DNA of 64,000 nucleotides, taken from contig VRVR01000027.1 in the NCBI GenBank assembly GCA_009859145.1, forward strand, positions 1 to 64,000, read 5' to 3'. Below, piece after piece: positions 41,724 to 43,676 of this stretch. The position numbers were made by a program, and so were the translations under genes. Every line of letters begins with the position of its first letter. The stretch's first letter is position 1. This DNA is from Andalucia godoyi And28. Lineage: Eukaryota > Protista > Jakobida. Under the pieces are notes generated by a model. That model made no database searches, had not been told where the DNA came from, and was given only the letters and a program-made list of their open reading frames with translations.

Positions 41724-42446
41724 TCAGGAACGATTGTTCAGCAACATGATGAATTCCTCAAGAATACCGGATCCTCGATTCGCGAGAAAACGCCAAAACT
41801 CTTGCAGCGACTGTTCAGAGACTGACACACAGTTGTTGACAAACCACAGGGCGGCTTGTGGACCCGATACAGCTAGTCTGGCGTTCAGGATGTCTATTCC
41901 ACCATTGTTCAGCGCAACGGACAGATCCGCAACAGCATCCTTCATTAGCTGACCATGTTGGACCAGATATGCATGGATAGACGAGACATTCTTGCCATAG
42001 AGCTGCAAAAACTGCGACCGGGAAGGAAGATTGTCGATTGAAAAGGGCGCATCATGTGACTGCAGAGAATGGGACCCGGATGCAGAGCCATGTGCTGTGG
42101 ATCTGTGAGAAGCAACGGAAGTGGAAAAGTTCAACGTAGGAAAGAGAATCGCGCTGACTTCCTCGAAAACTGCAGGGTGCCGAGAAAGATACCGGTGACA
42201 ACGTCGAACTCCATCCAGGTGCATGGGATTCAGAACAATTTGCTGCATCCACCGTTTCACAGCATCTTTTCGATTGGCCATCGCAAACACGCCATCCGAT
42301 TCTGCAGGATCAATGTCATACAAATCATGCACACCCACAGAGAACACTGTATCATAATGAGTTGCAAAATAATTGAGAAAAGGATTCAGATTCGCATTGA
42401 AAGCAGTTGCCAAGTCCTTTCGCGTCCAAACAGAAGACGATGTCAT
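41724..42446 (-). CDS. Tandem domain X-X' adaptor-like protein A (240 aa)
   Basis: ATG at 42446. X: WTRKDLATAFNANLNPFLNYF...VSAILFP; Ser/Ala/His linker; divergent X': PSRSQFLQLYGKNVSSIHAYLVQHGQLMKDAV...LQEFWRFL...ILEEFIMLL. No enzymatic motif. Confidence 0.85.
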   Translation of the reverse strand: MTSSSVWTRKDLATAFNANLNPFLNYFATHYDTVFSVGVHDLYDIDPAESDGVFAMANRKDAVKRWMQQIVLNPMHLDGVRRCHRYLSRHPAVFEEVSAILFPTLNFSTSVASHRSTAHGSASGSHSLQSHDAPFSIDNLPSRSQFLQLYGKNVSSIHAYLVQHGQLMKDAVADLSVALNNGGIDILNARLAVSGPQAALWFVNNCVSVSEQSLQEFWRFLANRGSGILEEFIMLLNNRS

Positions 42447-42932
42447 CCCCGTAGACCCGTGTGGGATGGTTTGAAAGGCGAGTAACAAAGAGGAAGAAAA
42501 AATGCAGAATCAATTTTTGTTACAGATTCATTCGTTTTCACCCAGAGAAATTGATATCTTCTCCGGAGCAATTATGTTTCGACACGTGTCGAATGGGAAG
42601 TTTCTGAATTGGCAAAGTTGTTCAGAAGAAGTGTATATATATATTTGCTGAAAATTGTCGACATTTCGATAGTTCGATCCGGAGGACGCATTCTCGACAT
42701 CGATAAGCTGTCTGACGTCTGCAAGATCCTCTCGTAAAACACAGGTTAGCGTTTACTCTTTGAATGGAAATTCAAGCAACAGCTGAATACCGTTGACGAC
42801 GGAAGCCACAACGTTGCGGAGTCCGTGAAATACTCTATCCTTCAACAAAAAATCAATAAAATTACATCACATTCAATGTTTACGTTCTACATTGTGGTGC
42901 ATGACAAAACGTCAACCGAAGGAAAAGCACAC

Positions 42933-43676
42933 CTATGGAATACGTTGGAATGAGGACAGGTTATCCAACAGCTGAATGAACTCATCCAGAATGCCAGATC
43001 CTTGGTTGTCGAGAAAACGCCAAAATTCGCGAAGTGACTGGTCCGAGATGGATACGCAGTTGTTGACAAACCACTGCGCAGCTTGCGGAGGTGACTCCCC
43101 GAGTTTGTGAGCCAGGACACTGGTCCATCCTTTGGAATGCGCGATTGGGAGGCTGGCAACCGCATCCTTCATCATCTGATCTTGCTGGACCAGATACCCA
43201 TGGATGGACGAGGCATTCTCGTGGTAAATCTGCAAAAACTGTTCTCGAGAAGGAAGATGGGCGATCGAAAAGGATGCATCCTGCGGCCGCAGCGTCTGCG
43301 AGGTGGACGCAGTCCCATGCACTGTGGGTGCTTGAGAAGCAGCACGGGTCGGAATACTCGCAGCAGGCGGAAAGAGAATGGTGTTGACTGTCGCTAGAAC
43401 AGCGGGATACCGAGACAGAAATGCGTGGAAACGCGGAATAGCATCCGGATACTGCTCATTGAGGACGATCCTTTTCATCCATCGCTTCACAGATTTTTCT
43501 CGATCATCCATATCCAGCAAGGCATCCGACGGACCAGGGCTAATGCTGTACAAGGCATGCACTGCATCCTTGAAGACGGTATCGTATTGCTCCTCAAAGT
43601 AAGTGGAAAAAGGCTTCACATTCGCTTGGAAAGCAGCCTTCAATTCGGAAGCTGTCCAAGGAGTAGAGGACGCCAT
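42933..43676 (-). CDS. Tandem domain X-X' adaptor-like protein B (247 aa), paralog of A
   Basis: ATG at 43676. X: WTASELKAAFQANVKPFSTYF...VNTILFP; X': PSREQFLQIYHENASSIHGYLVQQDQMMKDAV...LREFWRFL...ILDEFIQLL. Confidence 0.85.
   Translation of the reverse strand: MASSTPWTASELKAAFQANVKPFSTYFEEQYDTVFKDAVHALYSISPGPSDALLDMDDREKSVKRWMKRIVLNEQYPDAIPRFHAFLSRYPAVLATVNTILFPPAASIPTRAASQAPTVHGTASTSQTLRPQDASFSIAHLPSREQFLQIYHENASSIHGYLVQQDQMMKDAVASLPIAHSKGWTSVLAHKLGESPPQAAQWFVNNCVSISDQSLREFWRFLDNQGSGILDEFIQLLDNLSSFQRIP

Follow-up and report, generated by a model that had tools for sequence, protein, structure and literature searches.

Two tandem genes beside a Kelch-Roc gene of Andalucia godoyi encode candidate ASC-like adaptors made of a domain and its probable diverged copy

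The presence of one domain of about 100 residues, here called X, both at the end of large GTPase proteins and at the start of smaller proteins encoded beside them raises the question of what a protein made of X and little else might do. Two such proteins are encoded by genes A and B, which lie in tandem in a stretch of 64,000 nucleotides of Andalucia godoyi And28 (GenBank assembly GCA_009859145.1, contig VRVR01000027.1, positions 1 to 64,000 of the forward strand), hereafter the window. This is nuclear DNA of a jakobid flagellate. In both proteins X is followed by a flexible linker and by a second domain, X', which very probably arose long ago by internal duplication of X, before A and B separated. 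We propose tentatively, and with somewhat less than even confidence, that A and B are paralogues that serve, without enzymatic activity, as adaptors or scaffolds comparable to ASC, in which two death-fold-like (CARD-like) bundles are joined by a disordered linker of ~27 residues. The two genes and their parts are placed as follows.

41724..42446, minus strand: gene A, an X-linker-X' protein of 240 residues (stop codon included; open reading frame [ORF] from the first ATG; EukProt model P0002)
42135..42446, minus strand: domain X of A (residues 1-104); X hidden Markov model (HMM) E 5e-56; seven helices, AlphaFold confidence (pLDDT) 87-96
42054..42134, minus strand: linker of A (residues 105-131), rich in Ser/Ala/Thr/His; AlphaFold pLDDT <50, predicted disordered
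41727..42053, minus strand: domain X' of A (residues 132-240), from hhalign against X; pLDDT 70-87 in the full-length model
42933..43676, minus strand: gene B, an X-linker-X' protein of 247 residues (stop codon included; ORF from the first ATG; EukProt model P0001)
43362..43676, minus strand: domain X of B (residues 1-105); X HMM E 6e-54
43281..43361, minus strand: linker of B (residues 106-132), from alignment to the linker of A
42936..43280, minus strand: domain X' of B (residues 133-247), 65% identical to X' of A; weak collinear second X HMM domain
41724..42488 and 42933..43688, minus strand: the open ORFs that hold A and B, from the ORF list

A preliminary description of this DNA had placed two tandem X-linker-X' genes downstream of a Kelch-Roc-X gene and in its orientation, and this layout was borne out by the ORFs, the gene models, and the similarity of the two products. 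The proteins share 55% identity and can be aligned over their whole length with one gap of a single residue, B being longer by seven C-terminal residues. Both reading frames are intact, and identical sequences are present among the EukProt gene models of A. godoyi; an exact sequence look-up of A and B in public assemblies returned no record. The Kelch-Roc-X gene, whose product is the candidate sensor of the system, directly adjoins B on the upstream side. The two proteins consist of two related domains and a linker, and of nothing more: scans with Pfam (at E <= 10) and NCBIfam found no meaningful family and no catalytic motif in either. They begin with a sequence, M-x-S-S-x-x-W-T, that they have in common with P0004, a protein of 405 residues from the same window that also starts with X. 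The net charge and isoelectric point of the X and X' copies showed no complementary pattern.

The motifs quoted in the preliminary description for X' are present, and the alignment shows them to be collinear with X, including the end QEFCAFL..VLREV of the X of ROCO-1, a second Roc-GTPase protein of the window. The profile alignment suggested there as a check also came out in favour of a common origin. With hhalign, a seven-sequence profile of X matched the two-sequence profile of X' with a score of 21.7 (E 0.0036), and a profile of the five sequences of the main X group matched it with E 0.0018. Once realigned, the match is collinear over ~90 columns (X 8-101 against X' 12-106). When the columns of the X' alignment were shuffled 300 times, the observed score was never reached (null 11.3 +/- 2.1, maximum 18.9). 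As a second control, we scored 253 real segments of 110 residues from other proteins of the region, one of which includes part of a genuine X. The X' of A (score 23.6, 78 columns) ranked above all 252 true background segments and was beaten only by the one with a partial X. A background segment in ORF 27509..29626, with a score equal to that of X', was rejected as a domain, being a local match of 21 columns (RWM..I..P).

HMM searches point the same way in both directions. With the X HMM, the X' of A and that of B both show up as weak second domains spanning HMM coordinates 9-89, and the X' HMM finds weak matches in the X of B and in the X of P0004. In the AlphaFold model of A each half has seven helices, of 10, 10, 11, 9, 13, 10, and 11 residues in X and of 10, 10, 10, 11, 13, 13, and 9 residues in X', a short extra turn being ignored in both. 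When the hhalign alignment is laid over the DSSP assignment, helices and breaks agree in 89% of the columns at shift 0 and in at most 83% at other shifts. The invariant positions of X are mostly kept in X' or conservatively replaced (T/S-R, F/Y, N, Y, H, V, L, W, F-L, L). Overall, X' is very probably a copy of X, with statistical support that is moderate.

The substitutions between A and B suggest that both halves have been kept for a function. We compared the genes over 240 codons by the method of Nei and Gojobori, taking alignment columns 104-133 as the linker. This was another of the checks that had been suggested, and it found both halves constrained: the whole proteins have a proportion of nonsynonymous differences (pN) of 0.26, a proportion of synonymous differences (pS) of 0.58, and a ratio of the corresponding rates (omega, dN/dS) of 0.28, with regional values of 0.37 (X), 0.63 (linker), and 0.16 (X'), all of which are rough because dS, at 1.0-1.4, is saturated. 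The excess of synonymous differences is nevertheless large, with pN well under pS in each half. Wherever dS was estimable between two X copies of the window, omega was 0.30-0.48. Judged from these patterns, X and X' are both under purifying selection, X' more strongly, and A and B therefore look functional. The duplication that separated them is old, since dS exceeds 1 and the flanks no longer align: at the DNA level the X' regions align at 72% over 370 nucleotides, and the X regions only in one stretch of 42 nucleotides (81%). At the protein level A and B share 65% of X' versus 49% of X, so that the two halves have had different histories.

These results bear on an alternative that we consider quite unlikely, namely that X and X' are lineage-specific helical bundles without a role in death-fold signalling, X being for instance a dimerisation tail of Roc proteins, and that A and B are by-products of a partial duplication of the 3' end of a sensor gene, with little or no function. 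Both ORFs have stayed intact through a divergence with dS above 1, with pN far below pS in each half, which argues against such by-products. The sensor genes have no X', and hence A and B are not plain 3' fragments of them. Furthermore, the N-terminal sequence is conserved from the methionine onwards in three proteins that start with X. On the other side, neither A nor B has a sequence-level link to known families, and no homologues were found beyond one species among 1.84 billion representative proteins.

The predicted fold is where ASC enters the comparison. The full-length AlphaFold model of A has a mean pLDDT of 77.9, with confident X, a low-confidence linker, and X' in between (values above). 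In Foldseek searches of the PDB, the first match was full-length ASC (2kn6), aligned over 229 columns. The CARD of NLRC4 (probability 0.77, TM score 0.65 normalised to the target, root-mean-square deviation 3.6 A) comes after it, and the list also includes the CARDs of ARC (TM 0.58), Apaf-1 (TM 0.54), RIP2, MAVS, and cIAP1, and the death domains of Pelle and Tube. Death-fold proteins make up ~16 of the 24 PDB matches, and in the viral library the match of highest probability is again a CARD protein, E10 of equine herpesvirus 2; every E-value in these searches is above 1 (1.1 or more in the PDB). The death fold is a compact bundle of six antiparallel helices and ~80-100 residues, in which CARDs have helix 1 split. 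A CARD with a broken helix 1 is compatible with seven helices. On the strength of the models, the fold of X is probably death-fold-like and CARD-like, without being assigned to the superfamily. The predominance of death folds among the PDB matches, about two thirds, and the CARD at the top of the viral list argue against a generic bundle; E-values above 1 speak for it, as small helical bundles readily match one another.

Several results weigh against reading A and B as ASC-like proteins, those E-values and the saturation of dS among them. Scored alone, the X' of B (18.9) falls below 5 of the 252 true background segments (6 of 253 in all), the best of which are short local matches of ~21 columns. 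The input to the models was shallow, with seven sequences for X and only two for X'. Folded alone from these two sequences, X' reached a pLDDT of 43, and its confidence in the full-length model may thus lean on X; we kept the model of X' alone out of the fold search. Pfam, which includes entries for effector-associated domains (EADs), returned no CARD, Death, DED, Pyrin, or EAD family for A and B at E <= 10, and profile searches of X and X' against PDB sequences retrieved no death-fold chain. X' gave no match at all in the latter search, and a match of X to a designed armadillo repeat was rejected as chance, being made of repeated 5-bit stretches. Finally, X' was not found outside A and B, neither in an exhaustive HMMER search in which a profile of A and B was compared at E <= 0.001 with 1.84 billion representative proteins, the A. 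godoyi proteome included, nor in the 64-kb window with an HMM at E <= 10.

The distribution of X itself is wider. Searches with tblastn and hmmsearch identified five copies in the window: those of A and B, and those of the following three genes.

44237..47743, minus strand: Kelch-Roc-X gene, candidate sensor, 1168 residues from the ATG; X part at 44240..44560, C-terminal
17167..18384, minus strand: P0004, the protein of 405 residues that starts with X; X part at 18073..18384, N-terminal
18778..22560, plus strand: ROCO-1, second Roc-GTPase gene; divergent X at 22231..22557, C-terminal

P0004 and ROCO-1 are neighbours (17167-22560) and are divergently transcribed. The Kelch-Roc-X protein matches the Pfam families Kelch (E 6e-44) and Roc (E 1.1e-9), and ROCO-1 matches Roc (E 1.4e-6). 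Residues 736-1062 of the Kelch-Roc protein, where COR was sought, match no Pfam family at E <= 5, and a diverged COR may lie there. The label "ROCO" that these genes had been given is thus half verified: Roc is detected by Pfam and COR is not. The X of ROCO-1 is recognised by the X HMM (E 7e-48) but is divergent and has an insert of six residues.

In the search of 1.84 billion proteins described above there were six matches, five of them X proteins of A. godoyi and the sixth a low-complexity match to the linker. Within the reach of this sequence search X is therefore an orphan domain confined to A. godoyi. Word-indexed searches returned only B for the query B, and nothing for a profile of five X copies; they are uninformative on family size because the index misses even the paralogue A. 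In EukProt, the paralogues recovered are named ANDGO_01445, ANDGO_00624, and ANDGO_01237 of A. godoyi. ANDGO_01445 (P0003) combines on a single chain Kelch, Roc, X, a linker, and a nucleosidase-like C-terminal domain. X is thus found in four arrangements: it ends GTPase proteins, it begins separate proteins, it connects a GTPase module to a nucleosidase-like domain within one chain, and it occurs together with X' in A and B.

The assignment of the last domain of P0003 comes largely through a relative, as it shares 73% identity with the C-terminal region of ANDGO_01237 (P0008), which matches the NCBIfam model of MTA/SAH nucleosidase with E 5.8e-5 over most of the model. P0003 itself matches an MTA/SAH nucleosidase of the PDB weakly (E 0.45), in two collinear stretches that include the G.xG and EME motifs. 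The C-terminal domain of P0004 has no family match of its own in Pfam or NCBIfam, and the motif FKPxHV..G.CAG is the sole feature that it has in common with the nucleosidase-like domain of P0003. With phmmer, 103 residues of this domain (~17167-17990, minus strand) match the kinetoplastid mitoribosomal protein uL29m (6hiv_A2) with E 0.004, possibly by chance. In P0008 the nucleosidase-like domain is preceded by a different helical domain of ~120 residues, Y, which has no similarity to X and no copy in the 64-kb window. Going by its position, Y may be a second coupling domain, for another class of sensor.

The X copies are related in a way that only partly follows their positions. The X domains of A and of B are each 57% identical to that of the Kelch-Roc protein, and 49% identical to one another. 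The closest relative of the X of B is that of P0003 (66%), and the linkers of these two proteins match at 16 of 28 positions. The X of ROCO-1 is 43% identical to that of its neighbour P0004, which in turn is 51-54% identical to those of A, B, and the Kelch-Roc protein. Within the X of P0003 (residues ~835-975), the first 30 columns have 16 of 29 matches to the Kelch-Roc X versus 11 of 29 to B, and the remainder 60 of 79 to B versus 50 of 79 to Kelch-Roc, the linker again siding with B at 16 of 28. This X looks chimeric, which hints that recombination inside X joined a sensor gene to an X-first gene downstream of it; since the counts are small, we take it as a lead only. In the linkers that follow X, a motif (T/A)HG(S/T/G)(A/S)S is conserved among A, B, P0004 (near 17990-18072, minus strand), and ANDGO_01445, and is kept although the modules downstream differ. 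This could be a processing or phosphorylation site.

The mechanism that we envisage starts from the Kelch-Roc-X sensor. Once this is switched on and oligomerises, its C-terminal X would bring in A or B through homotypic contact with their X domains. A and B would probably dock on different X-bearing sensors, because their X halves have diverged. The conserved X' would provide the common output, most likely by X'-X' self-association, A with B included; this is the simplest output, given that no other protein has X' and that Y is not X'-like. Such contacts would cross-link and enlarge the assembly, as in the ASC speck, and X sites would become locally more concentrated for effectors that carry X, for example P0004. 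Two further observations count for a scaffold of this kind. One is the contrast between a diverged X (49%) and a conserved X' (65%), which fits a divergent input and a conserved output. The other is the direct fusion of Kelch, Roc, X, linker, and nucleosidase-like domain in ANDGO_01445. By extension, A. godoyi, a free-living excavate protist, might have a complete death-fold-type network of its own, with Roc-GTPase sensors that end in a CARD-like domain, nucleosidase-like effectors that start with the same domain, and an ASC-like adaptor that arose by internal duplication, a larger claim that we regard as possible but doubtful.

The missing partner of X' is what separates this scaffold from a true bridging adaptor such as FADD or MyD88, in which X would sit on the sensor and X' would recruit an effector with an X'-type domain that has diverged too far or is absent from the searched databases. 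In a bridge each domain has its own class of partner; here X has partners, and X' occurs in no other protein of the window or of the 1.84 billion representatives. The preliminary description had allowed X' a second specificity, for another effector, and the search for other proteins with X' found none. Of its comparison with ASC and FADD, the structural part stands (X' aligns with X, the helices are in register, and ASC and CARDs are among the matches, at E >1), and the functional part stays at the level of a proposal. Y was considered as the partner of X' and rejected, because hhalign aligned the two across 13 columns only, at E 0.064, a result that 9 of 150 shuffles equalled. A bridge remains attractive in that the two domains are distinct yet related and differ in conservation, and in that the effector family swaps its N-terminal modules, the nucleosidase-like domain standing behind X in ANDGO_01445 or behind the unrelated helical Y in ANDGO_01237. 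The cut-off of the whole-library search, which we estimate at ~36-40 bits, would also miss a domain as far from X' as X' is from X. Even so, the absence of a partner in the searched proteins and in the window disfavours a simple bridge, and we think it unlikely.

The same absence suits a third explanation, already raised in the preliminary description, that A and B are negative regulators or decoys comparable to cFLIP, vFLIP, the CARD-only proteins (COPs), and the PYD-only proteins (POPs). They would enter the X-X assemblies of the Roc sensors through X and, lacking an enzyme, would cap the assembly or compete with X-bearing effectors, thereby setting a threshold of activation; X' would steady the inhibitory contact or keep X auto-inhibited. 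That A and B have no enzymatic domain and no Pfam or NCBIfam family agrees with this, and their position immediately downstream of the sensor gene is a plausible one for a dedicated regulator. Tandem death-fold inhibitors exist in animals and in their viruses. A simple decoy, however, needs only X, and it is X' that has the lower omega (0.16 versus 0.37 for X); since it is conserved more strongly than X, X' has its own function, and one under constraint. In addition, the long disordered linker is as in ASC, whereas the tandem DEDs of FLIP pack rigidly, and the best structural match over the whole chain is ASC. Inhibition is accordingly a real contender in our view, though on balance improbable, and the ASC-like scaffold is the reading that we carry forward.

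The other genes of the window give the locus its context. Around A and B, the region 37482-41369 (plus strand) encodes a protein of 1295 residues with an N-terminal GTPase of the dynamin/MMR_HSR1 type, convergent with gene A; a trypsin-like C-terminus noticed by eye in this protein (TAGHV, GDSGAVW) was not confirmed by Pfam. At 33258-36931 (minus strand) two ORFs that overlap by 184 nucleotides (35081-35264) encode a WD40 propeller with Roc, then a GRF zinc ribbon with DUF4365 (E 1e-16), and are probably one gene broken by a short intron or a frameshift. At 48160-52044 (minus strand) a protein of 1294 residues has a STAND-type P-loop (AAA_16, nSTAND5) and TPR repeats, and its N-terminal 450 residues give a weak, nearly full-length match to CHAT (caspase-like; E 0.15). 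Further away, 9989-13048 (plus strand) encodes a protein of 1019 residues that combines a beta-propeller of PQQ type with numerous teneurin-type EGF repeats and a DSL (Delta/Serrate ligand) domain, so that this jakobid has an extracellular architecture resembling that of animals. Teneurin-type EGF and DSL domains are typical of eukaryotes. No tRNA genes were found in the 64-kb window. On these grounds, and since EukProt includes the proteins in its A. godoyi set, we discarded the possibility that the DNA came from a bacterium or a phage. With its WD40-Roc, dynamin-like, STAND-TPR, and ROCO-1/P0004 genes, the window is, by domain content, an island of conflict-type genes, and this supports, without proving, a role of the cluster in immunity or self-defence.

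The nuclear genome of A. godoyi has ~20 Mb and is compact and almost intron-free (Gray et al. 2020, PMC7050145), and the uninterrupted ORFs of the window are consistent with this. The genome paper (PMC7050145) makes no mention of Roc, Kelch, or the X family, and a literature search returned no published account of the X family in A. godoyi. In animals, cell death and innate immunity are organised by homotypic adaptor domains with the death fold. Outside animals such domains are documented in bacteria (PMC7159879, PMC8195603). An orphan CARD-like family in a jakobid would carry this logic of assembly to a deep-branching unicellular eukaryote. If the reading holds, signalling by higher-order death-fold assemblies would not be limited to animals and bacteria, and would either be ancient in eukaryotes or have been assembled independently in a unicellular lineage. 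The X family brings together three states, i.e., sensor-X and X-module in separate genes, the fused sensor-X-module, and X-X'. Such a compact and nearly intron-free system would be a convenient test of how sensors, adaptors, and effectors arise by domain duplication, gene fusion, and fission.

How far do A and B resemble known systems? The closest comparison is with ASC/PYCARD, the vertebrate inflammasome adaptor, in which PYD and CARD are joined by a linker. Both are small, consist only of two related helical bundles with a flexible linker of ~25 residues, and have one domain that matches a domain on a nucleoside triphosphatase (NTPase) sensor. Their sequences are not similar, however. The sensor of ASC has a NACHT domain with an N-terminal PYD, whereas here it is a Kelch-Roc GTPase with a C-terminal X; the CARD of ASC recruits caspase-1, whereas X' is without an effector partner in the searched proteins. 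X' is also, very probably, a recent-lineage duplicate of X rather than a member of a separate death-fold subfamily, and the host is a unicellular jakobid. The inhibitors cFLIP, vFLIP, COPs, and POPs resemble A and B in being non-enzymatic proteins made only of death folds that act on homotypic assemblies (in the case of A and B, the fold is predicted and the action proposed). They differ in layout, as COPs and POPs have a single domain and the tandem DEDs of FLIP are rigidly packed, whereas A and B have two domains and a disordered linker.

On the side of the sensor, DAPK1 is an animal ROCO protein with a Roc module followed by a C-terminal death domain, and the Pfam entry for Roc is named after DAP kinase. 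The Kelch-Roc-X protein has the same order of a Roc GTPase and a C-terminal domain of death-fold type (predicted for X). DAPK1 differs from it by its kinase and ankyrin repeats, in place of which there are Kelch repeats here, with COR undetected by Pfam, and its death domain has no detectable sequence homology to X. In fungi, the genes of NLR/effector pairs share a short motif, and some fungal NLRs have N-terminal domains of the PNP_UDP type. As in the X system, a sensor NTPase and the product of an adjacent gene share a terminal recognition element, and the presumed effector belongs to the nucleosidase/phosphorylase superfamily. In contrast, the fungal element is an amyloid motif and X is a domain of ~100 residues, predicted to be folded, which lies C-terminally in the sensor and N-terminally in its partner; in place of a NACHT or NB-ARC protein, the sensor here is a Roc GTPase.

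The last comparison is with the EADs and with the Death-like domains of bacteria, both from conflict systems built around an NTPase (Kaur, Burroughs, Iyer, Aravind 2020, PMC7159879; 2021, PMC8195603). EADs are small, non-enzymatic, and mostly alpha-helical, with one copy at a terminus of a core NTPase and others on modules whose genes lie next to it (Kaur et al. 2020, PMC7159879). In these systems the same effector can elsewhere be fused directly to the core, and EADs have been likened to animal Death-like domains (PMC7159879). X has a comparable size and type (~100 residues, an all-helical model, no family or catalytic motif) and a comparable placement, at the C-terminus of Kelch-Roc and ROCO-1 and at the N-terminus of the adjacent A and B and of the divergent neighbour P0004. 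The direct fusion has its counterpart in the single chain of ANDGO_01445. It was by such a pattern that Kaur et al. (PMC7159879) defined effector-associated coupling domains. Several adaptor domains can occur in one protein, and the copies are lineage-specific, in both cases. In the EAD systems, copies from neighbouring genes are most closely related to one another, and here the values are mixed: A and B are each closer to Kelch-Roc (57%) than to each other (49%), but ROCO-1 and P0004 share only 43%, and the nearest relative of B is P0003 (66%). The differences are that EADs belong to prokaryotic operons and X to a eukaryotic nuclear gene cluster, that a free-standing protein of two such domains only is atypical of EADs, and that Pfam at E <= 10 places X in no EAD family. 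Taken together, the domain arrangement of X is largely of the EAD type. X belongs to none of the described families, and A and B, on computational grounds and in one species, would work in the manner of ASC/FADD adaptors and of the EAD/Death-like coupling of sensors to effectors.

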